From Piromyces finnis finn (lineage: Eukaryota; Fungi; Neocallimastigomycota), in the NCBI GenBank assembly GCA_002104945.1, contig MCFH01000049.1, forward strand, positions 62,001-126,000: a DNA stretch of 64,000 bases, given 5' to 3'. Position numbers and translations under genes: made by a program. How positions within the stretch are numbered: position 1 is the stretch's first letter; each line of letters starts with the position of its first letter. The notes beneath the pieces are model-generated. The model had not been told where the DNA came from, made no database searches, and saw only the letters and a program-made list of their open reading frames with translations. Positions 20,941 to 43,067 of the stretch are shown piece by piece.

Positions 20941-21509
20941 TATTAACAAGATATTATAAAGTATTATTATATAATGCTATTTTAATTAATAATATTATGA
21001 GAATTAAAAATTCTTGTAATGAAAATTTATTACTCTTAGTCTTAAACTTTTTAAAATTTTAATTATAGTGATTTTTGATAATTAATGAATAGTTTAGTTT
21101 TACAAAAATTATAGAGAATAGAAATAATAATAATAATAATAATAATTGTTTTCAACAATCTATGTTTTCCCTTTTAAATTATTTATACCAATAATAAAAT
21201 AGAGTTAATATAAATGAAATCCAATCTCTCCATGGTTCATTTTAATTACAGTTAATTTTTTTTTTTTTTTATAATTTTTTACTTTTTATTTTGATTAATT
21301 TATTATTTTTTTATATTTTCTATTTTTTTTCTATGAAAATTGCATTTGTTCAACAACAATGTTTTTATTTTTTTTAGTTTTATATCAATTTGTTATGAAA
21401 AAGGTTTTATTTTTTTCTTTCCGAGATTTACTTTTATATGACATTAACTGTAAAAAAATTCATTTTACAGTCACCTAAATTAGTATTTTGATATTTCGAT
21501 TATTTTGAA

Positions 21510-22333
21510 TGTTTATAAACTGTCTCTTTATTTTTTATAGAAAAATTTTCTTATTCAATGTTTTCAAGAATTCCATCAATGAAATAACAAGTAGAAAAGT
21601 AGAATTCAAACTATTAAATAATAATGTTTATATATTAAAATTATGTATATTGTAAATATAGTTGTATAATTTTTTTTTTTTACTTTATTAATATCTTTTG
21701 AATCCTACTAATATAATTAATACTTACAATAACGAAATTATAAATAAAACAAAGAATTAAACCTCCAAAAAAATATATTTTATTGATATGTTCTTCATTA
21801 TCTATATTCATAAAAGAAATAATTGTAAAAACACCAGAAAAGAAAATTGAAATTCCTACTTGTATAAAAACTATAAATTTAAACCACTTTTTAAAATTTT
21901 TTAAAATTCCTTGTTTTTTCTAATATTAATATTAATAATAGTATAAATAAATAAAATTTTATTAATAAATAATTAAATTCATTTTCATTATTCATGTATA
22001 AAAAAAAAAATGAAATAAATATAATACTCACTCTTATAACACCATAAATAAGAATTAAATGATAAATACTGAAATAAAGAAACATAAAAGATACAGCAAA
22101 TTCTCCAACTTTTTTTCTCTCTGAGATATACAAATTGAAAATTGCATCAACAATAGCGTTACAAATCTTTATAATTTCGATTTAATTAATAAAATTTTTT
22201 TATACTAATTTATTTATTTTATTTTAATTTTTTTTAATTGAATACTACTTACTGCTAATAAAAGAGTGAAAATTATAACAGATATTTTCTTTGTTAGGAA
22301 AGGATAAAAAATACATTTATCTAAAAAACCAAA
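21510..22333 (-). pseudogene. Four-TM Cys-N-terminal family copy A (start codon lost, stops in last exon)
   Basis: Exon 1 reads GFLDKCIFYPFLTKKISV..., with GTAAGT/GTGAGT donors. The last exon reads EFYFSTCYFIDGILENIE*. Confidence 0.75.
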
Positions 22334-23119
22334 TTTTTCTTTCATTGTTTTATTATTATTACTTTAAAATTTTTATATATATAAATAGTTGAATTTTTTT
22401 TTTTTTAAAAATTAAATAATATTGGAAAATTATTTTCTTTTTATACATATTTCAATATTTGTGTAACCCTTCAAATTTTTTCATTTCTATTAAAATTTAA
22501 ATTGGTCATATATTATAATATATTGTTAATTAATCTAATATTAAAACTTTAATAAATATAAAATTTAATTGTGGAATCTTCTTTTTATCCTTTATATAAA
22601 TTTGATGAATAATGTATTAGTATGAGTTTTAAAAACATGTTAATTATATATATTGTATATTTTTAGTATGTCTTTTAAAAACATTATGTTAATTTATAAT
22701 ATAAATAATAAAACATTTAATAATGAAATATGTTGATGTATAATTATACTAACCGTTTAATTATTTTAAATAGGTAATGGATATTTATGTGTTCTATTTT
22801 TTAATTTTATTTTTTATATTTTGCTTTAATTATAGTTTTACACATTTTATTTTCATTTATTTTGTTTTTTTTTTTTTATTGCTAATTAAGAATTTTATAT
22901 TTTATATTTTTTTTTAATTATTTTACATCTCTTCATGTGAATTGGATTAGTTTAACATTTTATTATTTAACAATTGATAGTGAAAGAAATTATTTGATAC
23001 ATATTTTTTGAATATTTATATATATGGTTTGATATCCTATTTTATATATCGTTAACTGTAAAAATAGCCATTTTATAAGAAATTAAATATGTATTTTGAT
23101 ATTTTTTTTTAATTTTTAT

Positions 23120-23690
23120 AAACCATCTTTTTTTTTTTTTCTAACTGAATTTTCTAATTCATAGGATTTAATAAGACTATTAAAAAAATGGATATGTAAT
23201 AATCAATCTATTAAATTAAATATAATAATAGATATATAATTAGGCATATTACATTAATTTTCATTTTTTTTTCATTTCATATTATTATCTTTTTAATTTT
23301 ATTAATAATGCTAATATTTACATGAAATAAACTAATAATTAAACAAGAAATACTAATAATAATAATTATGGTGGTCAAGTCGACATTAATTAACTTTTTT
23401 GTTATATCCCTATTAATCACATATATTAAAGCGAGTAAAGCTATAGCTAAAATTTGAATAATAACGACAACTCTTAAAGATACTTTATTATTTTTTAAAT
23501 GACTTAGATTTTCCTAGTACAATATTTATAATATTTAAAATTCTTTGGAAAAAAATAATTTTTATTTACGTATAGAATTAAACTTACACATTGGAAACTA
23601 AAAATTATGTATATAAAAACACAAATTAATAAATGTTAAAATATTAAAAGTGCATTTGATACATCATCAAAATATTATACCTTATTATTA
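23120..23690 (-). pseudogene. Four-TM family copy B (exons 2-4 recognisable, degenerate)
   Basis: Exon 3 reads ENLSHLKNNKVSLRVVVIIQIL.... The last exon resembles ...SLIKSYELENSVRKK..DGL*. Exon 1 is not recognisable. Confidence 0.6.
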
Positions 23691-24750
23691 ATAAAAAAAC
23701 AATAATGACATGAATTTCTTTTTTTTTTATTTTTAATTTAAATATTATTATTATTAATAAATTTCACATTTATTTACCTTTAATTTACCTATGCTTTTTC
23801 GTTATAATTATTTATTGTAATTAATTATATTTTAGCTAAAGGTACTTTTAAATAATAAATATGTTTCTTCTCCTTCACAGCCTTCCTTTGTAATTTCTAT
23901 ATATAAATTTATGAAAAATTTTTAATAATTTGTGTAACCTCATCATTAATGAAAATAAATCAAATAATCAAACCTTAATAAATATAAAAATATAATGTGG
24001 AATAATCTTTAATTTATTTTTTTATTAAATTTAAATTTGAAGCATAAAAGAAATACCTAATAATAATATAAAATAGGCAGAAGTAGTAGTAGTAGAAATT
24101 GTTGTGTTGGTTGGTTTAGAGAGATATTTATTATTATTTAAAATGTTTTTTGAAAAAGAGCATTGAATATTATATAACAAAAATAATTGATAACAATGTA
24201 GCTTCATTGAAAAAAAAAGGTTTAATTAGTAATAAGATGATATGAAACGACTAATTATACAAATCCATAATAAAAATAATTTTGCATGGTTTACCACTAC
24301 AACAATACATATATAATTTTTTTTACAAGAAAAAACTACATTTATATCATTGAATTATTAGTGTTTCTCTATCAATACATTTCTTGACCATTCGTAATGT
24401 ATAGTATAATAGTGCTCAAATATAATATTCATTTATTGTATGTAAAGAACAAGCATTAACAATATATTTTGTTATATTTTTTTATTTAAAAATCTGATAC
24501 TATGATTATTAAAGGATATTAAAAGAACAAGGAATGCTTTTTTGCTTTTATCAATAATTAATATAATACTTATTTTTAATACTATTTATAATTGTATAAA
24601 AAATATATAATAATGATAATGAATAATATTTATTTTATTTAATATAAAAAAGTTACACAAAGATTAATGAAATTCGTATAAAAAGAAAAAAAAATTCAAA
24701 TTAAATAAAAAGTATTATAAATAAGAAATTATAATAAAAATTATAATGAA

Positions 24751-25510
24751 ATGGGTCTTTTTAGCAAATGTATTCTTTGTCCTTTCTTAACAAAGAAACA
24801 ATCTGTTAAAGTGTGTACTTATATATTACTTGTAAGTATTTTTTTAAGTAAATATGAAAATAAACAAAGAAAAATATAATAGTATGAAATTATGTATTAT
24901 GTTCAATGATATTAAATTAAAAGAAAAAAGGTTTTTTCATGTATTTTTCATCTTTAGTTATGAAATACTTTTTTCTATTTTTATAAATATTTCACTTATA
25001 TTCTTACTTTTAGGAATGAAAGATGTAAGTATATGTATTATTATTTGTTGCATATTTATAAATTTTATTAATTATTGATATTACAATAATTATGGATATT
25101 ATTATTAGAATGATCCTAAACTTTTAAAAAAATTTAAAAAATGGTTTAAAATCATTCTTATCCTTATATTAGCAATTTTCATATTTATTATTGCTTTAAT
25201 TATTTATCTGTATGTCCTTAGTCAAATTAAACTCGACATATATTTTAATTTATTTATAATTATTTTTTTAATTTATTATAGTATTTATGTAAGTAAAACA
25301 ATACATACAATTATATACACATATAATTGCATATGCATAATTCCAATAATTCTAATGTATTGTTATTATTTTTAAAATAAATATTTTTTTATTGTTTTTT
25401 TTTCAATTAACAAGGTTTATTACTACAAATTCACATGTCATTATGTTGATGAACTTATTAAAACTATTGAATTAGAAGAGTCAGCAAGAAAAGAAGAAGA
25501 CGGTATATAA
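24751..25510 (+). CDS. Four-TM family copy C (4 exons)
   Basis: MGLFSKCILCPFLTKKQSVKVCTYILL|gtaagt. The last exon is VYYYKFTCHYVDELIKTIELEESARKEEDGI*. Confidence 0.8.
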
Positions 25511-26394
25511 ATATTCAAAATGTATAAAAATTTTGTTGGTTGTAAAATGATTTTTTTTACAATGAACAAAATATAAAAAATTGGATATTCAACAAGTATC
25601 TATAAAAATAAATAATATAAAAAAAACAATAGTTATAAAATAAATTAAAGTATTGAACAAAATTCAATTATCATAAACAAAATATATGAAAAAAAAAAAA
25701 AGATAATAAAAATTAAAAATAGACAAACAAAAATAATAACTAACTAAAAAAAAAAATAAAATGTAAAATTATAATTAAAATAAAAGTTAAAAAAAGCAAA
25801 AGAAAAAACAAAAACACATAGATATAATATAAATAAACTGTTAAAATAGGTAAAATTCTGTATATTTGTATTTATTTAATGGCTTTGTTTTATGAAAATT
25901 GATATCAATTTATAAAATTTATAGTAGTAATAAATAATAATAATAATAATAATAAAAAGATTTTAATTAATAATTTCTTGTTAAATTATTGTTCTTCTTT
26001 AATTAGTGAAACTATTCCATTCGATTATCCCTATAAATAATTAAATATTATTTATAAAAAATAATAAAAAAAAAATACTATTATCAATTTACACTATATT
26101 TTATATGTGTGCATTTTATTCATTCATTTAATGATAATATTAGAATATCAATCCACAATATTTTGAATGTTCAAGGTAAAAAGTTATTTTAATACTATTA
26201 TTATTATAATTCTATATAAAAAATAAAAATTACATTATTAAACAGAACTTATATTTTATTTTTATTCGAATTTAGAAAATAAAAATAAAATAATTAGGTA
26301 TTATGATTATATATTTTATCTTTTGAATATACTAAAAGATAAAACTAAAAGGTTGGTAAAAATAAAGAAATAATAGTCCAATTAAATATACTTT

Positions 26395-26726
26395 TACATT
26401 TTTATTGAATAGGTAAGAAACGATAAATGATAAATGCTCTTTATATATATATAAAAAACAAGGTTACCTAAGAACATTGAAATTGGTATAAAAAGGAAAA
26501 AAAAAAAAATTCCACTTTCAATTTTTCAATAAAAAAATAAATTTAATGAAAATCAATATTACTATCAATATAATAATAAAATAAATAAATGTAATAAAAA
26601 AAATAAATATATTTTTACCATTAAAACTACTTACAATTAATAAATAAAAACAAATTTTAACATATTTTTTTGCTAAAAAACAATGAATACATGAATAGAT
26701 TTATTCAAAAAAAAAAAAAGAAACAT
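26395..26726 (-). pseudogene. Four-TM family copy X (frameshifted exon 1, decayed exon 2)
   Basis: Exon 1 contains CFLAKKYVKICFYLLI|gtaagt out of frame with the ATG at 26726. Confidence 0.6.
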
Positions 26727-27359
26727 TTTCCTTTTTTTTTTTAGTATTGAAAGTTTTTTTAATTTTCATTTGAGGAAAAAAACAATTTTTTTATTCCGTT
26801 TTTTATTATTCTTCGTGTAACCTTTAAATTTTTCAATTATATTAAAAATCTAAATATCCATATATTAATTTAAAGGAAATAAATTAAATAAACTAACTTT
26901 AATAATTATAAAAAATAATAATAGAAATTCTTATGGTTTTTACTTATTTATTTATTGTACACTGCTACTAGTAAATCATTTTACATAAATATTTATATTT
27001 TGGAATGTAGCACTATTTTGAGATATTAATTTGTTCTTTTGTTTTTTTTTATATATACTAAAAAGGTTCTTTAGATATATTATAATTTTTATTATTATTT
27101 TTTTATGTATCAACTTTAATAGAAAAAGAATAAAAGATTATTCCACAATTCAATTTTATATTTATTAGGGTTTTTCTATTTGATTGATTGATTACCATTA
27201 AATTAATATATGAAAAAATTTGAAATCTTAATAGATATGAAAAAAAATAAGAGGTTACACAAATAATTAAAAAGAATATAAAAGAAAAAAAAATTCCCAT
27301 TTTATTATATTTTAAAAAAAAAAAAAATTCAAATATTTATATAAAAATAAAATAATAAA

Positions 27360-28166
27360 ATGGGCTTTTTTGATAGATGTTTTTGTTTTCCTTTATTAAC
27401 GAAAGAGCAATCTGTTAGAATATGTACATATATATTAATGGTAAGTAGTATTCAATTAAAAATAAAATATTTAAAAATTTAATAATGAAAAAAAATAAAC
27501 CATTACATAAATGTATTAATTAAAAGATATTTAAATAAATATAAAAAAAAAAGGCAGCTAATCTTATTTTGTTACCTGGTAGTATAATTTTATCTGTTCT
27601 TTCAATAATTTCACTTTTAAATTTACTTAAAGGAATGAATAATGCAAGTATTTATATTAAAAATTATTATTTATAAATTATAGTATTGAATACAAATGAT
27701 AATCTATAATTTTTTAAATTATTTTTTATTTATATTATTATTAGAGTGATCCAAAATATTTAATTAAATTTAAATCGTTATTTAAAATTGTAATGGTTTT
27801 ACAAATAATATTTCTATTTATTATTGTTGGATTTTATTGTATTATCCTGAAAGAATTTCCTACAGGAGATAGTTTTTATCGTTTTTTTATATTTACTGGA
27901 TTAGCTTCTTATATAATTTATTTCTTGTCTTTTGTAAGTTTTAATAAATTAATAAAAATGTTAATAATATATATATAATTATATTGATGCTATATATAAA
28001 TATAATATAAATATATAAATATTAAAATATTATTATTATTTTTAAATAAATATATATTTTTTTAATACATAAGTTTGATTACTACAAATTCACAACTCGT
28101 TACGTTGATGAACTTCTTGAAACTCTTAAAGTAGAGAATTCAGCTAGAAAAGAAGAAAGTTTATAA
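27360..28166 (+). CDS. Four-TM family copy D (4 exons)
   Basis: MGFFDRCFCFPLLTKEQSVRICTYILM|gtaagt. The last exon is FDYYKFTTRYVDELLETLKVENSARKEESL*. Confidence 0.82.
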
Positions 28167-28469
28167 ATGTTTTAAAAAATACATAAAAGAATTAATTCAG
28201 TTAGTTGTATAATGATTTATTTTTACAATAACAGAATATAAAAAAAAAATGGATTTTATTCAAAAGATAAATATATCCAGCAAAAAAAAACTTTAATAAC
28301 AATTGTTATAAAAAATTAAAACACTGTTATTGTACTAATTTAATTTTCATAGATAAAAAAAAAAAAAGTTGTAAAAAATTAAAAATAAAAAATATAATAA
28401 AATAACAAGGTATTAAAAAAAAAAAAAAAAAAAAAAGAAATAAAAAATACATAAATAAAAAATTAAATA

Positions 28470-28550
28470 ATTAGAGTTGCGGTTATTTTCTATGTTTAGC
28501 AGATGAAAAAGCTATTAAAATTTGTACCTACTTATTTATTGTAGGTAGTT
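28470..28550 (+). pseudogene. Four-TM family exon-1 remnant
   Basis: SCGYFLCLADEKAIKICTYLFI followed by GTAGGT; no ATG and no downstream exons found. Confidence 0.55.
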
Positions 28551-28587
28551 TATAAATAAAAATATAAGTACTTGATAATGAGAAATC

Positions 28588-28624
<37 letters not shown>

Positions 28625-29184
28625 TCTTTTATTATTTTTTATAAATAATATCTAAATCATTATAATAATAATCGAATAGAATGGTTTCAACAAAAGTAGA
28701 ATAATATTTTGATAAAAAATAAAATAAGTAATTTTTTTTTTCTTCTTCTTCTTTATATATAACCATTTATTGTTGTTACTCTACAATTTTTTAAAACTGA
28801 CTTTGATAATTATAAAATAAAATAAATAAAATAAAATAGAACGATTAAATAAAATAAATATTTAAATATACAAAAAATGTTGAATTATTTTAATAGTTTA
28901 TTGATATTCTAATTTTCCATTTTTTATTTCTTTTTTTAATTTTTTATTTTTTTTAATAATATTTGAGTTTTTTATTATTTTTTTTTATATAATTGAATTA
29001 GTTCAATAATAATGTTTTAATTATTTTTATTTATAACTCATGTTATAATTACTATGAAAAGAGCTTTTAAAAAGAATGTTTTTTTTATCTATTAATGAAT
29101 ATCTAATTTTTTATATTTTAAAAAATGAAACTAAATTTGTATTTTTGATATTTCATTATTTTAAATCTCCATAAACCATTCTCT

Positions 29185-30016
29185 CTAATTTCTAACTGAA
29201 CCTTCTGATTCATAAGCTCTAATAAGTCTATTGAAATAACGCAATGTAGATATACAGTAATCAATCTATTATATTAAAAAAAGTAATTCACACACATATA
29301 GATAGATAATTTTAAATATTAATTTTTTACTTTTTAATTTCATATTAATATCTTTTGAATGTTTTTAATATTATTAATACTTACAAGAACTAAACCAAAA
29401 ACTAAACATGGAATAACAATAACAATAATAGTGATCGCCAAGCTATTATTTATTAAAGTATTGTAAAAATACATCATACATACGATATAGGAACCGGAAA
29501 TAATTGTAATCATAATTTGAATAATACTAATAATTAATGAAAGTACTTTAACTATTTTTAATTGCTTTAGATTATTCTAATAAAATATTAGTAATAAATA
29601 ATTAATATTTCATATTTATAAACAAATAAAATTTTACTATCATAATTTATATATTTGTAGTAAAAAAAAAATACTTTTATATATAAATAATTAAACTTAC
29701 ACTTTTGAAACCATAAAATATATATATATATATAAAAATGGAAGCAATCATTAAAATAAATAATAGATTTACACCATAATCAATAAGATAGATTATTAAA
29801 TAAAAGGCAAAAATAGCATGAATCATCTTTATTTTTTCAATTAAATATTATTTAGTAAATAAATTTTAAATTAATATACTTTCTTTTTTTTTTTTTTGTT
29901 ATAATTAATTGTATTTTTAGTCATTAAATACTTACAAATAATATAAAAGTGAATATTTTAATGTATAGTTCCTTACTTATGCAAGGACAACAAATACATC
30001 TATCAAAAAAGTCCAT
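29185..30016 (-). CDS. Four-TM family copy E (4 exons)
   Basis: MDFFDRCICCPCISKELYIKIFTFILF|gtaagt, open exon 3, last exon IDYCISTLRYFNRLIRAYESEGSVRN*. Confidence 0.78.
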
Positions 30017-30754
30017 TTTCTTTATTTATTTATTATAATTTTATATATTTAATTTTAGTATTTTTCAACAATATTTTTCCAAAACTAATTTGATTTTTGG
30101 TTTTTTATTATTATTTTTAATTGCAGGCAGCTTTTGTTTGCGCTTAATTTATAAACTTTATTAATAAAGCTTATTATCTTATTGGATACAATTTTGGGGA
30201 AAATACTTTTGTATTTATATTGTTTGTGAAAGGTATTAAATTGTGTTAAATCTAATAAACCTCAAATAAATATTTAATTCAACAAGTAACTCTTTGAGTT
30301 TTCTTTATCTAGTCTTCCAAAAAATAATTAGACAATAATCCACAATTCATTTTTATATTTATTAAAGTTTTTATTTTTCATTAAATTACTAATATAATAA
30401 TATGTTCAAGTCACATATTATTTTTATATCATAAGGTCATATAAAGGGAAACAAACTATATAATTAGACTTTAGTATAAATTAAGTAAAAAATATTAAGA
30501 GTTGGTTAATTTAGGTTTATAATTATGTCAACTTTATTAATATATTTTATGATAAAGAACTACTAACGTTACATTCTTCTCAAACTACATATATTTATAC
30601 ATTTACATTGTGGCTTAAATATCTAATCAAATACAATACATACAAATACGTTTCAATACATTTCAATACATTTCAATACATGTGACATAACGTTTCACAT
30701 ATTCTAACAAAAAAAGAGTAAATTAGTCTCCATCTAAGAATATAATAGGTATAA

Positions 30755-31495
30755 AAATTGGGTATAATATATTTGAGTCATTTTAATTAAAGAAAGAAAG
30801 CCACTATCATACTAAAGTATAATAATTGTATTTGACTCCCAAATGGGACACCGAGTCAATTTTTTTTTTTTTTTTTTTTTTTTTAACTTCCGAGTGCATT
30901 TGTCCCATCGATCGGAGTTAGCTCCAATGGTGGTTCTTAGAGAAACGTTGGCTCATTTCTATTGCTAGGTGATTGTAACCCTCCTGGTCTGTCATACTGT
31001 TTCTTCAGCTTCGACGCTCACTTAATCCATGTACATTAGATGCATGTCACCGAGTCAAAGATCAAAATTTTGTCATGGAACAAAATTATGATCTCCATTG
31101 GCTGCGCTGGCCTTCCTGGCCTGTCTTACTGTTTCTTCAGCATTGACGCTCTTAGATGTTGTTTCAAACCTTTTGAATATTGACCATTGTTGGCCAATAA
31201 CAAAAAGCATAATTTTAGTTAAAAGTTCCACTGTTACCGTCAAGAATGGTGTTCCTTCGTAGGTGCCCGATTGAATCTGACACTTGCAAAGTTCTTTCCA
31301 TTCCCTTTTATTGTAGTTGATATTATTAAAATTTCTTCCCCCAAGAAGGAATTTAAATATTTTATTGCACACACTAGAATAATCATATACACATATTAAT
31401 ATTCACCGGATTATTAGAGCTATTACTATTATTAATTAAATTACTATCGAAATTAGAATTATTATCTTCATTATTGCTATTACTTCCATTATTAC

Positions 31496-31564
<69 letters not shown>

Positions 31565-31930
31565 TGGTAGGACTGTTGGAATTACGTTGACTGAAAAAAT
31601 TGAATAACTAAACTATGAAATTGTAATGTTTAATACGGATATCTCTAAATGTTGGACAATCTAATAACCAATGCTTAATACTTTGATCACCACTCTTGCA
31701 ACATGGACAGTAGTTAGGACTGACTGAAAAATATCTTTTCAAAACCTTGTTATTAAGAGCTTTAATAACTGGTTTAAAGAGAAGGATTCTTATCAAATGG
31801 AATATCATGATAAGAGTAGTTGGAATGGATTTTCCTGCAAAGTTAAAATGTTGGATCTTTCTTGTTCTGATTTTCTACTGATTCAGGATGAATCACCATC
31901 GTTGAACTTTTCTAGATGCCAAATTTCATT
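30755..31930 (-). mobile_element. 5'-truncated LINE (ORF2 C-terminus plus 3' UTR), same family as 52050-54740
   Basis: Zinc finger CPCCKSGDQSIKHWLLDC, Asn-rich tract and GTPFLTVTVELL; colinear with 53900-54740. Confidence 0.9.
30860..31047 (-). mobile_element. 5'-truncated copy of the SINE-like element, inserted in the LINE 3' UTR
   Basis: 25-nt poly(A). Perfect 11-bp TSD CACCGAGTCAA at 30849-30859 and 31048-31058. About 5 differences from 40609-40771. Confidence 0.9.
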
Positions 31931-33172
31931 TCATAGTAATATATCCCTTTGATAAAAGTAAATATATTATCAAGTGAAAAATCGTGTATGAATTATCATT
32001 CTTTTTTTTTTTTTTTTTTTGTTGAACTTTAGTACATTGATTATTTCATTAATTATACATGATTATTTATTAATACTTTAAAAATATAATCTTAAAACAA
32101 AAAAAAAAAAAAAAAAAAAAAAATATTAAATATTAATATTTTGTGGGTTTATTAAATATATATACATATATTTACTTTAATTTATTTATTAAAAAAAAAA
32201 AAAAAAACTACACCAACAAATATTTTTTATTCTAATATTTTTCACTGATGTTATTGATATGCCTTTCTTTCTTGACATAAAATTATAAGAGTAATCAAAA
32301 TAATGTAATTATAATAATAATAGTATAACTTTTAGTTTTAATAGAAAATTATTATTAAAGGATTATTTTTTTTTAAAAATATTTTAAATAAATATAATCT
32401 TTTTTTACTATTATTTATTATTACTATGAATTATAAAAATATTTAATTTTTAAAATATAAGATGAATCTATTAAAAATAAATAAAATATTTTAATATATA
32501 CAAAACTTTTTATTTTAATGTTTTGTTAATGTTATATACATATGATTTTTTTAACCTTATCTTTATTCTTTTTATTTTTATTTAATTATTATTTTACAGT
32601 TTTTTTTAATATTTCTCTTTTTTAAATATTTTATTTTTTTATTTTATTTATATTTTTTATGTCTTTTTTTTTTTAATCATGAAAATTAAATTAGTAAGAT
32701 ATTTAATAATAATATCTTATTTGTTTATAGCAATTGATATAAAGCTTTTTTAAAGTATATCATTTATTTATTTACTAATTAAAAATTCAATTTTTTATAT
32801 CTCATTAACTGTAAAAAAAAATCATTTTACAACAAACTATATTAATATTCTGGTATTTCTTTTTAGATATTTATAAACCATCTTCTTCCTTTCTAGCTGA
32901 ATCTTCTAATTCAAGAGTTTTAAGAATTTTATCGACATAATCACAAACAGATATGTAAAAACCAATCTATTAAATATAATTTTTATTTATAAATAATAAT
33001 AAATTACAATAATATACAATGTAAATTTTATTTTATATATATAGCTTCTTTTTTTTATTTATTTATTATTTTTTATAATTTTATTAAGATCATTATTACT
33101 TACGTGAAGGGAAAAAACAATTAAATTTAATGCACCATTAATAAAAAATAATTTATATATGATATCCTCATT

Positions 33173-33954
33173 TGATATAATTTGATAATAATCTTAATTT
33201 TGAATTTTACTTCAAAAAGTGATTATTATATTATATCTTAAGTTATAACTATATAAGTTATATGGATTAGAATTTGAAATTGTTTTTATAAAGATTAATA
33301 AAATTGTTTTATTAAAAACACTAAATTGTTTTATTAGAAACACTCGTTTTTCTAATATTTAAATATTTAAAATTTTATTTAATTAATTATAAAAGTGATT
33401 ATTAAAATTATAATATTTCTTTATTAATAATAATAATAATGATTAAAATAAGAATATTTACATGTATTTATATTTTCTTTTAATTTTAAACTATTTACAT
33501 TAAAACAATAAAATTAATAACTATTTACAATAAAAGTAATTAGAAATAACAATAAAAGAAATAATTAAAAGTTAAAGAATATAAAAAGTTGTTTATTTTA
33601 CAATTAATTAAAGTAATAATTATTTTTAGTATTTTAATAAAAGTGTTTAATTATATTATTTTATAACATGAATTATTATATTTGTTTACTTTTAAAGTGT
33701 AATTTACTAACGAAGTTATTAAACATTTAATTTAACAATTAATTTAACAAAAGTTATATATTTTGATCTCGATTAATTAAAGTTTATTATTTTCTTTCAA
33801 TAATCAAAACATATGCAGTGTTTAGGATTAATTTTATTTAAGAATTTTGGTAAAGTACTTAATTAAACTATAACTTGTTTTAAGTTACTTTTAGGGTTAA
33901 CTTAAAAATCAGGTATAATAATAATTTTATATTTATTAATTTCATTATTTATCA
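33173..33954 (-). repeat. 3' LTR; 33353-33954 is identical to 39627-40228, 33173-33352 is unique
   Basis: 602-bp blocks read identical by eye. Confidence 0.85.
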
Positions 33955-33967
33955 GTTTCTCGGCCTT

Positions 33968-36900
33968 TTAAGAATTAACTTCGTCCCTTGAAGTTAAATT
34001 TTGTTCTGGTAGAACGTAAGGAAAAATATTTTTAATATGTACATTTCTATCAAGTAGTTTTCCTGTATGTGGATCTTCAAGTACAACAGTATTAAATTTT
34101 TGTTTATTAACAACTTTATAAGGACCATAAAAATAAGGATTTAATTTACTTCTTCCTATTAATCTTATCATAACATAATCACCTGGTTTATAAGTTTTCT
34201 TTAAAGCTTTGGATAAACCTATTCTATGTTCCCAATATTGATTAGCATGATTAGAATATTCAGTAGCTTGTTTTACCCATTTTTGATGCCTTAAAAATCT
34301 TCGAAAAATATATTCTTCTTCTGTTTCATTAGGATCTTTATAAATATCAGGAAACATTATTTCTAATGGCCATGTGTCTCTTCTACCATATAATAGTTCG
34401 AAACTACTAAACTTAGTTTTTGAATTTTTGGTGGTTCTAAGTGCCCAAAGTGCAGATGGTAAATATTCATCCCATTCGGATTCATTTTCAATTAAAAGTC
34501 TTAAAGTTTTTCCAATTTCTTTGTTTCTATTTTCAATCATACCATTAGATTGTGGGTGATGAGGAGAAACAAAATGAACCCATGATCCATATAGATCAAT
34601 CATCATTTTAGTAATATCAGACATAAACGAACTTCCATTATCAGTAACAATTATTTCTGGTGGACCGTGTCTTGTTATTACTTCTATTAAAAATTTTATT
34701 ACTTCTTCTGATTTCATATTTGGGATTGCTTTAGCTTCAACCCATTTGGTGAAATAATCAACAAGGGTAATAATATAAGAATTTCCATGTTTAGTAAGTG
34801 GTAATGGACCAACTATATCTAATCCGACTCTAGTAAATGGTTGTTCAATTGGGGTTATATTATCTTCAGTATTTTTAGGTAAAGGCTTAGGTCTACAAAG
34901 TTGACATTTTCTACAGGACTTTACCCACATTCTAACATCATTCCAAATACCAGGCCAATAATAAGATTTTAAAATTCTATTTGTGGTCTTTTCAGCACCT
35001 TCATGACCAACAGAATGAGCACGACTAATAATATCTTTTTTATCTTCATCTTTGTAAATAACTTTAAGATATAATTCATCTTTTTTATAATAAAGAGTAT
35101 TATCAACAACTTGATAATTTTTAGTAAAATATTTTTTTATTCCTTCAGGTAGGTCTAAATCTCTTGGATTAAAATCAGACAAAATTGCATAAGCACAATT
35201 TACTATTTCATCAGAATTTTTAGAAGGTAATCTTGAAAGGGCATCAGCAAAAACATTTTTCTTTCCTTTATCATATTTTAATTCAATTTTATATTTATTA
35301 AATTCTTCAATCCATCTTGCATGTCTACCTTTTGATGGAATATTCTTTTTATAAAATCCCAGTAATGGTTTATGATCAGTAATTAATATGGTAGGATTTT
35401 TATTACTTATAATATATTGACAAAATTGTAGAATTGCATAATAAATAGCTAATCCTTCAAGGTCAGTAACAGAATAATTCTTTTCTGAAGTAGATAAAGT
35501 ACGACTAATACAACAAATTGGATGTTCCAATTTGTCCCCCTCCACCTGTAAGAGTACAGCACCAATGCCATTAGTTGATGCATCAGTACGAATAATAAAT
35601 TCTTTATTAAAATCAGGATAACTTAAAATAGGATCACTTAATAGACATTGTCGGATATCTTCAAAAGCATTATTACATTCTTGTGACCAAATATATTCTT
35701 GGTCTTTCTTTAATAAATTAAAAAGAGAGCTTGCTCTAATAGAAAAATTTTGAATAAATTTGCGGTAGTAACTAGCTAAACCTAGGAATGATCTTAGTTC
35801 ATTAACATTTTTTGGAGCATTCCATAAAGCAATACTTTGAACTTTAGAAGGAACAGTTTTTAATCCGTTAGGTGTAAGTACATGTCCTAGTACTTCTACC
35901 TTTTCTTGAAAGAATTTACATTTTTGTAAATTAAGAGAAAGATTATATTTAGATAATATTTCAAAAACTTGTTGCAAATGATAAAGATGTTCTTCTGGTG
36001 ATTTAGAATAAACAACAATATCATCAATGTAAACAAAAAGACATTTACCAATTAATGGTAAGAGAATCCTATTCATTTCTCGCTGGAAAGTAGCGGGAGC
36101 ATTAGTTAAACCAAATGGCATTACTTTAAAATTATAATTACCAAATTTCGTTGTAAAAGCAGTTTTTTCAATATCATTTGGGTTCATAGGAATTTGGTGA
36201 TAGCCAGAGTATAAATCTAAAGCAGAAAATATTTTTGCACCATTAACAGAAGATATTAATTCATCAATAAAAGGAAGTGCATAAGAATCCTTAATAGTAA
36301 TTTCATTAAGTCTTCTATAATCAATACACATTCTCCATTTACCATTTTTCTTTTGTACAAGTAAAACTGGAAATGACCATGGAGAGTGAGAAGGAGTAAT
36401 TAAACCTTTATCAAGTAATGAAAGAATTTCACTTTTTAAAATATCAGCATGTTCCTTAGATAATTTATAAGGTTTTAATTTTATTGGTTTATTAGTAGTA
36501 GTAATTATAGAATGAGGTTCTAAATCCGCAGTAGTTAATTGAGACATTGATGTAGCCATACAATTTTTATATTTATTTATAATGTGTTCAAATTTTGATT
36601 TAATATTATCAGGTATTGAATTTAAGATTTCTTTTAACGTATCTTGAAATTCTTGGTTTTCTTCTTTTGAAATAATTATAGAATTCATTAAGGGAATATC
36701 ATTAGCATCATTATCATTACTATTGATAATGTTTGTAATTTTCTTTAAACCTTTTTTAGTTTTCTGGTATATATAATCATCATCAGGGTCAATAAATAAA
36801 CGGTATTTCTTTTGAATACCTCTTCCAAAAATTATATCAAAGTATGGATTACTTTGTTCAATAATATAAAATTTTTCTAAAATAGTACAACAATTATTAA

Positions 36901-37822
36901 TATTTATTTTTAAAGTAGTAAAAACATTTGTAGGAACAGTAGTACCATTAGCAATAGTTATATTTTGTTCCTTATCACTTTTTTCAATATTTTTATTTGA
37001 TAGTTTATTAAAACCATTTGTAGTAATGATATTGACATTTGCGCCAGTATCATAAAGAATTTTTAAATATTTTCCATCTATATCACCAATTATTAATGGA
37101 ATATTAGAGTTATTAAAGGAGTACATCACTTTTTCAACTTTAGGTTTACATCCTTGTTCTAATTCTTTTCTAAGCGATGGACTAGCAGAGAGTAATTGAG
37201 AAAGACTTATTTTTGGATATAAATTATTTGCTTCTTTAATTATACTAAATTTATCTTTGGTTTTTAACATTTGTATTTCTGTCATATTTCTTTTTGTAGT
37301 TACCTTGGGTTTGACAAGATTTTTCTTTACTTTTATATTATTAGTTTCATTATTATTTTTAAAAGTTTCTTCATTAGTAGAATTGTTAGAATCATTAATT
37401 TCAATAGGTTGGATATGTTCTTTTGTATTCGTAACTTCTTCTAAAGGTATTTCATTGGTATTATTTTGTTCTTCTTCACTTTCTATTTCTGTTTCTTCAT
37501 TTGGGATTTCTTCCATCTCTTCATCTTTATCTTCACTAATTTTTCTTCTACGAGTATCTCTAATATTCTTCTTTTGTTGTTTTAAATTCCTAATGTTGGG
37601 TTGGTTAAGTATTGAGGGTTTGACAATACTTTTATTATTTGGTGATATTTTATTTTTATCTAGTGTTTTAACATTTATTCTCTTCTTTTGAGCGGCATTT
37701 ATAGAATAATTATTTTCATTAGAGATATTAGAATTTATTTGGGCTTCTTGTACCTTTTGTGAATTGTTTGCAATTTTAGTTTTTATGGGAGATTGCTTAC
37801 TCCCATTATTTAGTTTAAATGA
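33968..37822 (-). CDS. pol: Gypsy Pol (aspartic protease, RT, RNase H, integrase); expressed by -1 frameshift from gag
   Basis: ILYDTGANVN, YIDDIVVY, IRTDAS, HSVGH...CRKC, GLDIVGPL, TDNGSSF, PQSNGMIE and GPY motifs. The frame stays open upstream of the tracked Met (37516) to 37822. Confidence 0.95.
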   Translation of the reverse strand, partial: SFKLNNGSKQSPIKTKIANNSQKVQEAQINSNISNENNYSINAAQKKRINVKTLDKNKISPNNKSIVKPSILNQPNIRNLKQQKKNIRDTRRRKISEDKDEEMEEIPNEETEIESEEEQNNTNEIPLEEVTNTKEHIQPIEINDSNNSTNEETFKNNNETNNIKVKKNLVKPKVTTKRNMTEIQMLKTKDKFSIIKEANNLYPKISLSQLLSASPSLRKELEQGCKPKVEKVMYSFNNSNIPLIIGDIDGKYLKILYDTGANVNIITTNGFNKLSNKNIEKSDKEQNITIANGTTVPTNVFTTLKININNCCTILEKFYIIEQSNPYFDIIFGRGIQKKYRLFIDPDDDYIYQKTKKGLKKITNIINSNDNDANDIPLMNSIIISKEENQEFQDTLKEILNSIPDNIKSKFEHIINKYKNCMATSMSQLTTADLEPHSIITTTNKPIKLKPYKLSKEHADILKSEILSLLDKGLITPSHSPWSFPVLLVQKKNGKWRMCIDYRRLNEITIKDSYALPFIDELISSVNGAKIFSALDLYSGYHQIPMNPNDIEKTAFTTKFGNYNFKVMPFGLTNAPATFQREMNRILLPLIGKCLFVYIDDIVVYSKSPEEHLYHLQQVFEILSKYNLSLNLQKCKFFQEKVEVLGHVLTPNGLKTVPSKVQSIALWNAPKNVNELRSFLGLASYYRKFIQNFSIRASSLFNLLKKDQEYIWSQECNNAFEDIRQCLLSDPILSYPDFNKEFIIRTDASTNGIGAVLLQVEGDKLEHPICCISRTLSTSEKNYSVTDLEGLAIYYAILQFCQYIISNKNPTILITDHKPLLGFYKKNIPSKGRHARWIEEFNKYKIELKYDKGKKNVFADALSRLPSKNSDEIVNCAYAILSDFNPRDLDLPEGIKKYFTKNYQVVDNTLYYKKDELYLKVIYKDEDKKDIISRAHSVGHEGAEKTTNRILKSYYWPGIWNDVRMWVKSCRKCQLCRPKPLPKNTEDNITPIEQPFTRVGLDIVGPLPLTKHGNSYIITLVDYFTKWVEAKAIPNMKSEEVIKFLIEVITRHGPPEIIVTDNGSSFMSDITKMMIDLYGSWVHFVSPHHPQSNGMIENRNKEIGKTLRLLIENESEWDEYLPSALWALRTTKNSKTKFSSFELLYGRRDTWPLEIMFPDIYKDPNETEEEYIFRRFLRHQKWVKQATEYSNHANQYWEHRIGLSKALKKTYKPGDYVMIRLIGRSKLNPYFYGPYKVVNKQKFNTVVLEDPHTGKLLDRNVHIKNIFPYVLPEQNLTSRDEVNS
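37785..37819 (-). other. -1 programmed ribosomal frameshift signal
   Basis: U UUA AAC heptamer in the gag frame, 6-nt spacer, stem ATGGGAG/CTCCCAT with an 8-nt loop. Confidence 0.85.
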
Positions 37823-38778
37823 TTATATTCATCATCTAATTCTGGACAATCATTCGTAGTATGACCTATTCTTTTACAATTTAAACAAACATTAATTTTT
37901 AGGTCAGCAAGCTTTTGAGTTATTTCTTTTAGTTCATCATCATTATTTTGTGGATATTTTAAGGTACTTCTTCTTTGCTCAACATTTTGACTAATATTAT
38001 TAAATCTTGGATAATTATTGTTATTATTATTGTAGTTATTATTTTGAATATTACTATTATAATTATTATTTCTGTAGTTATTAGTATAATTTCTATTATT
38101 ATAATTTTTAAAACTATTTTGGGTGGTATTATTATTATTCATTCGGTTATAACTATTAAAATTATTGGAATATGCTTTATCATTATTTCTTTGAGCATTA
38201 TTATCATTTGGAGATCTTCTAGAATTAATGGAAGTTCTTATTTTTGGTCTATTTTCTTCAACTATATTGAAAATTTTCTCTTTCTTGATAGTAATGTTTC
38301 TGGCTTCTTCTAAACTTTTTGGTTCAGCTTCTAAAAGTGCTTCGTAAGTTTTAGTAAGGTTTCTAAAAGCATTAATATAGTAGGACAATATGATTTCATT
38401 TGACATTTTTAAGTTTGTTTTATTTATTAAAGAGTCAAGTTTAATATTGAATTCAGATACACTTTCATTTTTCTTTATTGTAATAGTAGACAATTCTAAT
38501 AATCTAGAATTCTTTGGTACTGAACCTTTAAAATGACTTTTAAGGTTTTTGATGATGGTATTATAATCATCTGGTGTTTCTTTATTTAATGCATTAACTA
38601 CAATTGTTCTAGCTGTACCTGTAGTTAATGATATAAGGTATTCTAACTTTTCTTGTTCTGGTACCTTATATAAATTACACCAATGTTTGAAAGAAAATTC
38701 CCAATCATCAAATTCAACCTTTGTTGAACCCAAAATAGATATTCTATTAAAGGTAATACCTTTAGTAGTATTATCCAT
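37810..38778 (-). CDS. gag: Gypsy Gag (capsid plus CCHC zinc knuckle)
   Basis: 322-aa ORF upstream of pol with C-terminal CLNCKRIGHTTNDC. Confidence 0.92.
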   Translation of the reverse strand: MDNTTKGITFNRISILGSTKVEFDDWEFSFKHWCNLYKVPEQEKLEYLISLTTGTARTIVVNALNKETPDDYNTIIKNLKSHFKGSVPKNSRLLELSTITIKKNESVSEFNIKLDSLINKTNLKMSNEIILSYYINAFRNLTKTYEALLEAEPKSLEEARNITIKKEKIFNIVEENRPKIRTSINSRRSPNDNNAQRNNDKAYSNNFNSYNRMNNNNTTQNSFKNYNNRNYTNNYRNNNYNSNIQNNNYNNNNNNYPRFNNISQNVEQRRSTLKYPQNNDDELKEITQKLADLKINVCLNCKRIGHTTNDCPELDDEYNHLN

Positions 38779-39349
38779 TATTACTTATTATTTTTATTTT
38801 ATTTTATTTTATTTTATTTTAATATTCTATTTAAAAGTTCAATTTTTATTTATTCTCAATAATTTAGTTATAGGTACAATAATATGTTTTTATTTACAAT
38901 AGTCTTTATTTACAATAATATAATTTTATTTACAGGTATTTTATTTATTACTGTTATTAATAAAATATAATCTTATATAACGTTTATATAATGTAATATA
39001 AAAGGAGTAATTGGTTGTTGTTTGTAAACACTTGTAGACACTTGCTTTAGTTTTATTGTAATTAAGAAGATTTTATTTTTTTTTTGAGAAAATGTTAAGA
39101 ATATATTTTATTTATATTAAGTTATTTATATATTAGTATTGTTAAAAAAAATATTTAATTTAGAGTAGGATGTTTATTTTTATTTCTTTATTATAAAGCC
39201 GAAAATAATATTGATTATGTTATTATAGTACCTTCAGAGTACCCGACAGTTTCGTCACCGTGCCTTTCGACCTCCACTAACTAACCGTCATAAATATTAA
39301 GTGGTGTAATATTTACTTATTAGTTAGCGCTCTACTCCCCCACGATATG

Positions 39350-40228
39350 TGATAAAACTGCACTCTTACTAACTTACTATAAAACACTTTAATTATCTTA
39401 GTAATTAATTAACCGAAAAGATAAACAAAAGTTATTTTTCGCTGAAAATTAACTAAAAAGACAACTCAATATTATTGCTTTTATTATTTAAAATTTATAA
39501 CAATACTTTTAATTTTATTTGACCGATGATTATATTTTATAATTAAATAATTTTTATCTTTAATTTATAAATTATAATTATTAATTTATAATTATAATTT
39601 ATGTATTTCTTTTTCTTTTTTTTTTTTAATATTTAAATATTTAAAATTTTATTTAATTAATTATAAAAGTGATTATTAAAATTATAATATTTCTTTATTA
39701 ATAATAATAATAATGATTAAAATAAGAATATTTACATGTATTTATATTTTCTTTTAATTTTAAACTATTTACATTAAAACAATAAAATTAATAACTATTT
39801 ACAATAAAAGTAATTAGAAATAACAATAAAAGAAATAATTAAAAGTTAAAGAATATAAAAAGTTGTTTATTTTACAATTAATTAAAGTAATAATTATTTT
39901 TAGTATTTTAATAAAAGTGTTTAATTATATTATTTTATAACATGAATTATTATATTTGTTTACTTTTAAAGTGTAATTTACTAACGAAGTTATTAAACAT
40001 TTAATTTAACAATTAATTTAACAAAAGTTATATATTTTGATCTCGATTAATTAAAGTTTATTATTTTCTTTCAATAATCAAAACATATGCAGTGTTTAGG
40101 ATTAATTTTATTTAAGAATTTTGGTAAAGTACTTAATTAAACTATAACTTGTTTTAAGTTACTTTTAGGGTTAACTTAAAAATCAGGTATAATAATAATT
40201 TTATATTTATTAATTTCATTATTTATCA
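39350..40228 (-). repeat. 5' LTR (TGATAAA...TTTATCA terminal inverted repeat)
   Basis: Shares 602 bp with the 3' LTR. The inner boundary is inferred from the terminal inverted repeat and a nearby PBS-like TGGGGGAG. Confidence 0.75.
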
Positions 40229-40237
40229 CATTTTGTG

Positions 40238-40768
40238 TCGTTCCAGTTTTTATCCTGGTTGTTAAGGCGTTTCCTTAGCATACATAAGGCTTCTGATTCG
40301 ACCCCGCAGATGTCAGTGCCTGTGGATTTTCCCACTGGGTTTGCCATGGGTTGGGTTATGATATTCAGGTAAGTATAAATGAACTTTCTAATTTACTACT
40401 ATGATAATAACACTCGTCTAGCCGGCCTGAGAGGGTCTAGTGTACATGGTACATTCCAAATTAGAACTTAATAAGTGGTGACTTAGGCTATGCCAAAAAC
40501 ACATAATATTCCTTAATCAATTTAAGTGTAAACATTAGGGGGCGGTTGACACGTGATCCTCTTGACTATAAGAGGCTTAGCATTGTAGTTGTGAAATATC
40601 GTACAACGACATGCATCTAATGTACATGGATTAAGTGAGCGTCGAAGCTGAAGAAACAGTATGACAGACCAGGAGGGTCACAACCACCTAGCAATAGGAA
40701 TGAGCCAACGTTTCTCTAAGAACCACCATTGGAGCTAACTCTGATCGATGGGAGAAATGCACTCGGAA

Positions 40769-40799
<31 letters not shown>
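40238..40799 (+). mobile_element. SINE-like retroposon: tRNA-like head, unique core, LINE-related block, poly(A)
   Basis: TSD CATTTTGTG (40229-40237 and 40801-40809), 28-nt poly(A), tRNA-spaced D-arm, TTAGCAT loop and GATTCGACCC B-box, second copy at 30860-31047. Confidence 0.78.
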
Positions 40800-40803
<4 letters not shown>

Positions 40804-41989
40804 TTTGTGAAATCACCTTTATATCAATAATAAAAATACTAAAAGCAAATAATGCAATTATAATTGGAATTTGTAAAAGAATAACAAATCTAAAGATAGT
40901 TTTAGCTTTTTTCAATTTTTCTTGATTCTTCAACTTATAATAATGTTAAATTATAATTAAGTAATTTATATTAAAAATTTTTATAATTAGTTTAATTATT
41001 ATAATTTATTACTAATTCGTAAAAGGAAATAACATTACGTTTAATATATATAATTATTATACTTACTTTCTTGACGCTATAAAGAATAGATGAATTTACA
41101 ACAACGTTTATAAATAAAATAACACTAATTATCGTACCTTGAATATTGATATATGAAAAGAAAATTATGGCAGAAAGCATCTTTTTTTTTTTTAATTTAA
41201 TTATTTTAATTTGTAAGATTTCATACATTAAATTCGCAATTATATTATCTATTATTTTTAGAAAAATACTTACAATAATGTAATAAATAAAAAATATAGC
41301 ATATTCCTTTTTTACGAAAGGAAAACAACAACTTATAATGTGAAAGCTCATTTTCCTTTATTATTATTTAATATTATTTTATTGTTATTCTTTTTATTAT
41401 AAATAATTTTATTATTAAATTTTATATCGTTTAATTTTTTTTTTTTAAAATTTCAAAAATTGGAAATTATTTTTTTTTATATGAATTTCATTATTTTGTG
41501 TAACTTTTCAAATTTTTTCTTTTCAATTAAAATTTAAATTGTTCATATATTAATTCATTGGTAATTAATAAAACATAAAAACTTTAATAAATATAAAAAT
41601 GAATTGTAGAATAATCTTTAATTTATTTTTTTATTATTAATTTATAAATGATACATAAAAAATAAATAATAATAATAAAATAATAAGAAATAAATAATAA
41701 TATTTATAACTCATAATAATTAAAATGAATTAATAATACTGGTAAGAATGATAATTTATTATTTATTTTGAAATGTAAAATGAAGAAATTCATTGAAACA
41801 TTAGTTAAAAAGTAATGTTATAAAAGGTTTAATATAAATATTATTAATGATTATTTTTTTTTTATTATACTATATATTTATATTTAATAAATTAAAAGAT
41901 TATTCAACAATTCATTTTTATATTTATTAAGGTTTCTATATTTTTATTAATTACTAATGAATTAAAAAATATAAAATTACACAAGAATA

Positions 41990-42067
41990 ATGAGAATCTA
42001 CATTATTAGTCATATTAAAATTCTTGAATTAAAAAACTCAGCTAGTAAAGAATAAGATGCTTTTTAA
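41990..42067 (+). pseudogene. Four-TM family remnant G (promoter block joined to a decayed last exon)
   Basis: ...HIKILELKNSASKE*DAF*, followed by the family 3'-UTR hairpin at ~42084-42107. Confidence 0.6.
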
Positions 42068-43067
42068 ATAATAACTGAGATGGCTGTAAAATGATTCTTT
42101 TTACAGTTGACTGAATATAAAAAAACGGAATATCAATTAATATGTAAAAATATATATTTTGAAAAAATCGTTATCATAATAATTGTTTTAAATAAATAAA
42201 TAAAAAAAAGTTGAAGAATATTTACTAAACTTCATACATATATATAAAAATAATTAAATTATAAAATATAAAATATGAAAATATTTTATAATTTATAAAA
42301 AAATAAAATTAAAATATCATTAAAAAAACATCATCAAACTATTAAAATAATTAAAGGTTTTATATATTTAATAAATTGTTTGTTTATTTGATAGTTCAGT
42401 TATATAAATACTAACATAATAACATAATATTTATAAAATTTATAGTAAAATAAAAAAATATATTATTTATATTATCATAATAAAAAGCTATAATTTAGTA
42501 ATAATTTTTTGTTATTAAAGCTATTCCATTTGATTATTCTAATGTCATTTTAGTATTATTTCAGTCTTAATTCTATTAAAAAATGGATTAAATTGTAGGT
42601 ATATATTATTCTTAAATTCAAACAAACATAAAATAAGAAAAAATATTATTATTTTAATAATAAAATATAAAAAAACAATAAAATCAATAGAAAATAGAAT
42701 AATATTTAAATTTAAATATATATTTACTTTTTTTTTTAAAAAAAAAAAGTTTAAATTTTTTGCTTTATTTTTACTTTTATTTTTTTAATGTTTTAATTAC
42801 ATTTTTTTTTAATTCTTAACATTTTCTATTTTTATTTCTTATTTATTTATAATATATATTTTGTATAATAGCAATAACAATATTTTAATTTTTATAGTTA
42901 TAATAATTGTTATTAAAAAAGGATTTATTAAAAAATATATATATATTTAATATATATTCAATTCTTTATATTTCATTATCTGTAAAAAAATTCATTTTAC
43001 AACTAATTGAATATGTATTTTGTTATTATTGTATATTTTCAGATATTTATAAACTATTTTTTTTTCA

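Follow-up and report, generated by a model that had tools for sequence, protein, structure and literature searches.

A conserved 38-nt island, putatively an mRNA 3'-end signal, downstream of a four-transmembrane gene family of Piromyces finnis

The yeast polyadenylation [poly(A)] signal combines a UA-repeat efficiency element, bound by Hrp1, with an A-rich positioning element and flanking U-rich stretches. The UGUA element of cleavage factor I is bound by CFIm25 in animals and by Rbp35/CfI25 in Magnaporthe oryzae, while the replication-dependent histone signal has a 6-bp stem that includes G-C pairs, a U-rich loop of 4 nt and flanks rich in A and C, together with a purine-rich downstream element that pairs with U7. 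For the anaerobic gut fungi, whose non-coding DNA is about 85% A+T, we know of almost nothing on mRNA 3'-end definition or mRNA regulation, and nothing was found in the literature on 3' signals of anaerobic fungi. Here, we describe an island of 38-39 nt in the 3' flanks of a family of small four-exon genes with four predicted transmembrane (TM) spans, located in a 64,000-nt stretch of the P. finnis genome (the window; positions 62001-126000 of contig MCFH01000049.1, C177 in our numbering; assembly of 56.46 Mb in 232 contigs). We regard the island as a probable mRNA 3'-end signal private to this family, a putative role suggested by its sequence and position, and class it as a new family-private cis-element of the c1-c9 subclade, of the general 3'-untranslated-region (3'-UTR)/3'-end class. 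All evidence on the island comes from eight related copies in one genome.

Architecture of the island and its likeness to poly(A) signals

The family has 11 copies arrayed in tandem (c1-c11, the copies A-K of an initial annotation of this DNA) between 21 and 57 kb of the window. Eight of these paralogues carry the island, always in gene orientation, starting 29-83 nt past the copy's own stop codon; six of the islands measure 38 nt and two 39 nt. Its parts follow one another in the order closing base, UGUAAAA, loop UGAWUYU, UUUUACA, closing base, an 8-nt linker (consensus UUAAYGAA) and AUAUAAA, usually with more A behind it; the hairpin consists of 7 bp plus the closing pair and a loop of 7-8 nt. 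In c4, one additional loop base is offset by one missing linker base, so that the total is still 38 nt. Five hairpins are perfect, three are broken without compensation (c2, c4 and c9), one copy retains the box only (c5) and two copies have neither (c10 and c11); nothing comparable to the island was found in c10, c11 and the distant family members. The closing pair is C-G in c1 and c7, U-A in c3 and c4 and U-G in c2, c6, c8 and c9. The individual islands are as follows.

c1 island: 21433..21470, minus strand; hairpin 21448-21470; closing pair C-G, loop UGAAUUU; 11-bp stem, -10.4 kcal/mol, z -3.8; 83 nt after the premature stop
c2 island: 23041..23078, minus strand; hairpin site 23056-23078; 5' arm broken (UAUAAAA), 3' arm and AUAUAAA intact; -1.2 kcal/mol, z 0.13
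c3 island: 25540..25577, plus strand; hairpin 25540-25562; closing pair U-A, loop UGAUUUU; -13.1 kcal/mol, z -4.75, with an extended outer helix; 30 nt after the stop
c4 island: 28205..28242, plus strand; hairpin 28205-28228, weakened (UGUAUAA, 8-nt loop); -5.8 kcal/mol, z -1.6
c5 residual AUAUAAAAAA box: 29107..29116, minus strand; 5' arm and loop of the hairpin missing; placed from alignments
c6 island: 32794..32832, minus strand; hairpin 32809-32832; closing pair U-G, 8-nt loop; -4.7 kcal/mol
c7 island: 42084..42121, plus strand; hairpin 42084-42106; closing pair C-G, loop UGAUUCU; -9.3 kcal/mol, z -2.9
c8 island: 42965..43002, minus strand; hairpin 42980-43002; closing pair U-G, loop UGAAUUU; -6.5 kcal/mol, z -2.2
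c9 island: 45517..45555, plus strand; hairpin site 45517-45540; 5' arm broken (UACAAAA), 3' arm and AUAUAAA intact; -0.4 kcal/mol, z 0.66

The inverted repeat was recovered at all six hairpin sites listed in the initial annotation, and the closing pairs vary as it described; copies B and I (c2 and c9) are indeed degenerate, and the hairpin is absent from E (c5) and from J and K (c10 and c11). The distance from the stop, given there as about 30-60 nt, measured 29-83 nt, the two long distances being those of c1 and c8, which have premature stops.

In descriptions of fungal poly(A) signals, UA repeats precede an A-rich element and U-rich stretches are present as well, and UGUA is known as an upstream element or enhancer in mammals (PMC12667328). 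A UA repeat, an A-rich element, a U-rich stretch and UGUA are all present in the island, in the expected order. Like the bipartite signal of yeast and other fungi, the island stands tens of nucleotides past the stop, with AUAUAAA(AAA) corresponding to a UA repeat plus A-run and a U-tract just upstream; the known signals are, however, degenerate and variably spaced, whereas the island is a fixed 38 nt, belongs to one family and includes a hairpin. The yeast-type feature of a UA-rich followed by an A-rich stretch past the stop is found in the eight islands and c5, and is weakly specific at about 85% A+T. As in cleavage factor I sites, UGUA lies upstream of an A-rich box in six of the eight copies, but this tetramer, lost in c2 and c9, is less conserved than any other part of the island, whereas the AAAAUGA that follows is kept in most. 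No enrichment of TGTAAAAT was detected in the window (16 found, 22.5 expected).

The interpretation that we favour, and hold tentatively, is a composite 3'-end signal made up of a UA/A-rich poly(A) box and an upstream auxiliary hairpin. The AUAUAAA(AAA) box would supply the UA-repeat and A-rich part of a yeast-type poly(A) signal, and the AU-rich hairpin 8 nt upstream of the box, with its UGUA and U-tract, would serve as an auxiliary upstream element, acting by factor binding or by fixing geometry. Cleavage would then take place some 10-30 nt past the box, which would leave the hairpin inside a 3' UTR of roughly 100 nt. Transcription of the island, the place of cleavage, the bound factors and any importance of the fold itself are what we infer here from the sequence. 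A compact protein- or complex-binding site at the 3' end is suggested by the position after the stop, the fixed orientation, the lack of insertions or deletions (indels) and the separable invariant box; the box appears separable from the hairpin because c5 keeps its AUAUAAAAAA box despite the deletion of the hairpin.

Several observations weigh against a composite poly(A) signal. UA-rich and A-rich stretches are ubiquitous in a genome with about 85% A+T, and 38 nt of fixed sequence is more than an ordinary poly(A) signal should require. The half-island UUUUACA-N8-10-AUAUAAA is not enriched across the genome, with 179 occurrences compared with 223 for the reversed control, and neither a genome-wide pattern search nor a covariance model, applied to 150 of about 82,000 first-look candidates, found the whole island in a second gene family. 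Weaker conserved islands extend to about +400 nt, past the predicted 3' end. Finally, the state of the hairpin does not track the state of the gene, as it is perfect in the c7 fragment and in the split c6 and broken in the annotated c4 and c9.

Conservation and rarity of the island

Conservation was measured as the mean pairwise identity over the 28 pairs of the eight copies and compared with a shuffled null. The island reaches 0.82 (null 0.55, z 4.7), while the spacer between stop and hairpin stands at 0.48 (null 0.44, z 1.0), and the 70 nt downstream of the island at 0.61 (null 0.58, z 0.8). In a separate comparison, intron 3 past its first 45 nt lay at the shuffled level, with z between -1.6 and 2.7. 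Among 20-column windows of the 3'-flank alignment, the highest real score is 0.75, against a maximum of 0.59 in shuffled alignments, and the island is the strongest conserved block of the 3' flank. Its length stays at 38-39 nt while the spacer from stop to hairpin varies from 29 to 83 nt. Within the island, the 3' arm UUUUACA and the AUAUAAA box show no change in any of the eight copies, about one in five cells of the loop and linker varies, and three copies (c2, c4 and c9) carry a total of four substitutions in the 5' arm. The proviso of the initial annotation, that conservation might be no higher than that of flanking DNA given the age of the paralogues, can thereby be set aside, with the island at 0.82 and both flanking spacers at the null level. 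We conclude from these alignments that the island is under constraint and that a young age of the paralogues is not the cause, because the spacers and the interior of intron 3 are at the shuffle level and neutral sequence is saturated.

The same measurements bear on the proposal that the island has no present function and is residual paralogue similarity, or a product of short-tract gene conversion, containing a chance palindrome. Patchy similarity is indeed general in the family (promoter, 5' end of intron 3 and far 3' flank), c7, a fragment, and the disrupted c6 still have a perfect hairpin, and the fold z-scores stem from one ancestral hairpin. Against this, the flanks and intron interiors are fully randomized while the island holds 0.82 over all 28 pairs, the two heptamers are invariant in eight of eight copies, and no indels have accumulated in 38 nt although differences of up to 54 nt separate the adjoining spacers. 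Nor does an island of 38 nt amid randomized sequence in every pair resemble a conversion tract. We therefore consider an absence of function unlikely.

The island is rare as well as conserved. With up to one mismatch, TGTAAAA-N7-TTTTACA has five matches in the window compared with 0.58 expected, and none of 100 shuffles reaches five. The exact pattern with the UGA loop start has seven sites in the 56.5-Mb genome, five in this cluster and two that are unrelated, with no family gene upstream and no common flank. A genome scan with a covariance model, as had been proposed when the hairpin was first noticed, was run with a model trained on seven copies (c4 left out); among the 150 of about 82,000 first-look candidates that were scored, it recovered only the seven training copies and c4, that is, only the eight islands, and c4 scored 43.4 bits though absent from training. 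A miniature inverted-repeat transposable element or other dispersed repeat with terminal inverted repeats was rejected on the same grounds, there being no dispersed copies among these pattern sites and scored candidates. A metagenome pattern scan returned only three chance matches, on unrelated contigs of 30-44% GC. In a scan for shared k-mers (14-mers, two mismatches), the control equalled the real data at this base composition, and an apparent homology of the 3' half of the island with the 3' flank of a distant paralogue (L019/L021) was not significant. The initial annotation recognized no named element in the hairpin, in agreement with a search of Rfam 15 at E<=10 with both strands of the region 41900-43200, which covers the islands of c7 and c8 with flanking sequence and gave no matches.

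A 38-nt island that has stayed fixed amid drifted introns, spacers and transmembrane exons offers a clean, small target for study, and it could be tried as a terminator or UTR part in genetic tools for gut fungi. As it belongs to a single family in a single species and shows no covariation, its wider importance is limited.

The hairpin as a possible RNA fold, DNA element or splicing signal

The folding energies of the five perfect copies lie between -4.7 and -13.1 kcal/mol (z -1.2 to -4.75), and flanking sequence extends the stem to 9-11 bp or contributes an outer helix in c1, c3 and c7. The window contains 0.83 perfect 8-bp hairpins per kb when at least one G-C pair is required, which corresponds to about 0.03 expected per 38 nt, and in-register pairing amounts to 88%, compared with 30-68% when the partner columns are slid. 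The perfect hairpin of the five copies is one ancestral event and not five independent ones.

The covariation claimed in the initial annotation did not hold up. A seven-sequence alignment gave a covariation score of 0.167, while its shuffles averaged 0.171 and equalled or exceeded the real score in 268 of 500 cases; paired cells made up 88.1%, compared with 88.9% in column shuffles (71.4% and 74.5%, respectively, for the outer helix alone), and the RNAalifold covariation term was slightly unfavourable (+0.27), with no compensatory pairs. The variation of the closing pair needs no selection, because a transition on either side of a G-U pair always leaves Watson-Crick pairing: a single transition from U-G suffices for C-G as well as for U-A, and the U-A pair of c3 and c4, which have similar exon 4 peptides, may go back to one event. 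The sole column pair with G-C, G-U and A-U also shows the non-pair A-C twice, as independence predicts. Constraint on the linear sequence is pointed to instead, because the stem changes in the 5' arm are uncompensated while the 3' arm is invariant. Little or none of the fold is left in c4 and c9, whose genes are intact and annotated. The fold is accordingly plausible but unproven, and a linear-sequence constraint fits at least equally well, especially in the 3' half. What stands of the initial interpretation is an element that is conserved, foldable, fixed in orientation and without a name.

That interpretation was of a protein-bound regulatory hairpin in the 3' UTR, acting in stability, translation or localization apart from 3'-end formation; a specific RNA-binding protein would read the UGA loop start on the AU stem, which would place the paralogues under common control. 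This agrees with a stem conserved over 8-11 bp, a UGA loop start in seven of the eight copies, an island without indels and the excess of in-register pairing, and also with the restriction of the island to one gene family, which is what a dedicated regulon would show. It sits poorly, on the other hand, with the lack of covariation, with four stem substitutions that all fall uncompensated in the 5' arm and with the loss of the fold in c4 and c9; moreover, the conserved unit reaches past the hairpin to AUAUAAA, and no known class of protein-binding RNA hairpin or Rfam family matches. We rate this reading only a little below the composite signal, as possible but somewhat less favoured.

Comparison with described hairpins gives no closer relative. 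The replication-dependent histone 3' signal is the nearest, as an analogy of layout only: it too has a short hairpin soon past the stop of a multigene family and a second box at fixed spacing. The stem of the island, however, is 7-8 bp of AU with one G-C pair and its loop is 7-8 nt, with no Rfam match; none of the defining features of the histone stem-loop was found, and SLBP and U7 are, to our knowledge, not known in fungi. A PUF/Pumilio response element (UGUANAUA, with 9- and 10-nt variants) shares the UGUA core and the location in the putative 3' UTR of a gene set, but was rejected since all perfect copies read UGUAAAAUGA and lack ...AUA or ...UA at positions 6-8, 7-9 or 9-10. Smaug/Vts1 recognition elements (SRE), Roquin constitutive decay elements (CDE) and AU-rich localization stem-loops are likewise small stem-loops with a conserved loop start; the SRE has a CNGG loop and the CDE a tri-loop, whereas the loop of the island is UGAWUYU, 7-8 nt long, and has no Rfam match. 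A selenocysteine insertion sequence (SECIS) was discarded as well: AUGA does stand at the stem-loop junction, but there is a single short helix and no Rfam SECIS match, and an in-gene UGA occurs only in c8, where it replaces an Arg codon in a decayed tail. A C/D box reading was also rejected.

Quite unlikely, in our judgement, is that the island is recognized by a dedicated system of post-transcriptional control for this fast-evolving, species-restricted membrane-protein family, a system that may for example serve coordinated decay or the expression of only some copies at once. The layout of hairpin plus box may in that case be an analogue of the histone stem-loop and downstream element that evolved independently in an early-branching fungus.

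The inverted repeat could also work as DNA, as the site of a dimeric factor beside a TATA-like box (ATATAAAAAA), with a role as a downstream promoter, as a terminator or pause site, or as an insulator between closely packed, partly convergent genes. The presumed TATA box of the family promoters also takes the form ATATAAAA, the downstream islands to about +400 nt could belong to a separate transcript, and tail-to-tail gene pairs lie only about 1 kb apart. A dimeric site does not account for half-sites that are unequally conserved, nor for an asymmetric loop and linker that are conserved in one orientation; in addition, the nhmmer profile of the family 5' region matches no island, and the Rfam search of the c7 and c8 region found no RNA gene downstream. 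A DNA-level element is thus improbable. A decayed family core promoter was rejected separately, the resemblance (TTACA, TAATGAAAT, TATAAAA) being visual only and without an nhmmer match.

Somewhat less probable than a DNA-level element is that the conserved letters hold splicing or coding information. The arms would be splice-site look-alikes (GUAAAA as donor, UUUUACAG as acceptor) of a 3'-UTR intron or alternative terminal exon, or a mini-open reading frame (mini-ORF) of 6-9 codons would run from the loop AUG to the UAA of the box. A branch-point-like ACUAAU followed by UUUUCAUAG does occur about 130 nt downstream in several copies, but the confirmed donors of the family are all GUAAGT, the GU is missing from c2 and c9 and the AG from c3 and c4, and 21 nt is too short for an intron. 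For the mini-ORF, AAAAUG is present in all eight copies, five copies have nine codons ending exactly with AUA-UAA, and the +1/-1 indels of c4 restore the frame; nine codons are nevertheless unremarkable at an estimated 10% or so of stop codons per triplet, the frame is truncated in c6, c7 and c9, and third positions show no bias.

The gene family and its other conserved blocks

The copies were placed by tblastn with the annotated models and by six-frame reading, with the exons searched one by one, in DNA of 14-34% G+C (2-kb windows). Six of the 11 are annotated (ORX43911 to ORX43916: c4, c5, c8, c9, c10 and c11).

c1: 22406-21258, minus strand; tblastn/six-frame reading; premature stop
c2: 23761-23001, minus strand; tblastn/six-frame reading; no recognizable exon 1 or 2
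c3: 24751-25750, plus strand; tblastn/six-frame reading
c4: 27360-28419, plus strand; annotated, ORX43911
c5: 30078-28933, minus strand; annotated, ORX43912
c6: 33705-32619, minus strand; tblastn/six-frame reading; coding region split by a short interspersed element (SINE) and a Gypsy element
c7: about 41900-42298, plus strand; 3' fragment only, exon 4 degenerate
c8: 43922-42791, minus strand; annotated, ORX43913; premature stop
c9: 44641-45716, plus strand; annotated, ORX43914
c10: 49182-50300, plus strand; annotated (within ORX43911 to ORX43916)
c11: 55537-56700, plus strand; annotated (within ORX43911 to ORX43916)

Copy c6 is a single gene whose exon 3 is interrupted by the SINE, at 40238-40799, and by the Gypsy element, at 33173-40228; exons 1, 2 and 3a lie across the insertions, from 41351 down to about 40800 on the minus strand, and the remainder occupies 33172-32874 on the same strand. 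The models ORX43911 (c4, 27360-28166) and ORX43914 (c9, 44641-45482), each of 120 amino acids, join exon 1 directly to exon 3, and exon-2-like open reading pieces lie between those exons in both copies, so these models may skip an exon. A contig search found no transcript contigs encoding four of the annotated family proteins, and a search of sequencing runs brought up four that contain 5-17% of the sequence words, none of them recorded as RNA.

The four-TM family has no Pfam match, and MARVEL (PF01284) does not match at E<=1; UniProt labels c10 and c11 'MARVEL domain-containing', but the basis of this label was not reproduced and membership was rejected. A word search with c3 exon 3 and the c11 protein found relatives in this genome only, and an exhaustive exon 4 profile search of 1.84 billion representative proteins returned eight proteins, all from P. 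finnis. Because these searches found the family only in P. finnis, they offer no orthologous 3' flanks to compare. Distant members lie upstream of the window on the same contig (G000:C177:21-33 kb; loci L017 and L021-L023), with near-identical duplicates on a short contig (C75:19-22 kb; L018 and L019) that is possibly an alternative haplotype. Exon 3, which encodes two of the four membrane spans, has 17-27% amino-acid identity between copies, and its spans and loops are far more diverged than exon 1, the acidic C-terminal tail and several of the non-coding islands. Perfect 8-bp inverted repeats with a 9-nt loop are present in exon 1 of c3 (24773-24797) and c9 (44676-44700), over the codons of the conserved ...LTK(K/E)QSVK... 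The tail-to-tail pairs c4/c5 (28167-29186) and c7/c8 (42056-43071) have stop-to-stop distances of 1,020 and 1,019 nt; the two spacers are genuinely similar, with an identity of about 0.70 and z of about 8-9 in either orientation, and a recent segmental duplication as the cause of their equal length was rejected.

Besides the island, the copies have in common some 200 nt of promoter, a block of 42-47 nt at the start of intron 3 and weaker blocks to about +400 nt. The weaker 3'-flank islands (c4 28298-28312 and 28334-28350; c6 32679-32695, minus strand; c9 45779-45795; c5 28883-28899, minus strand; c7 42336-42352) include the palindromic AACAATTGTTATAAA and a second one, ACTAATTTAATTTTCAT, which has the look of a branch point plus acceptor, and a third, AAACTATTAAAATAATT followed by GTTTTGTATATTT, is located at about +330 to +390. 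The block at the start of intron 3 has an identity of 0.76-0.82 (c1 21686-21727, c5 29343-29384 and c8 43297-43343 on the minus strand; c9 45268-45309 on the plus strand) and has been lost from c3 and c4. It runs from GTAAGTATTAATA to GATATTAATA with the self-complementary word TATTAATA repeated, and is open in the reading frame of exon 3 for about 14 codons.

Promoter islands are common to most copies (c4 27254-27283; c1 22439-22467, minus strand; c3 24652-24683; c6 41475-41504, minus strand). They consist of GTTACACAAA and, about 10-20 nt further on, a TATA-like (G/A)TATAAAA, with a longer block about 100 nt upstream (TTATTCCACAATT...TATATTTATTAAAG). The profile of the family 5' region also detects a promoter plus exon-1 relic at 26603-26965 on the minus strand (E 4.5e-17), an exon-1 relic at 28458-28601 on the plus strand, 300 nt after c4 (E 3.5e-8), a further relic at 59990-60179 on the plus strand (E 4e-8) and a promoter piece beside c7 (41873-41995, plus strand).

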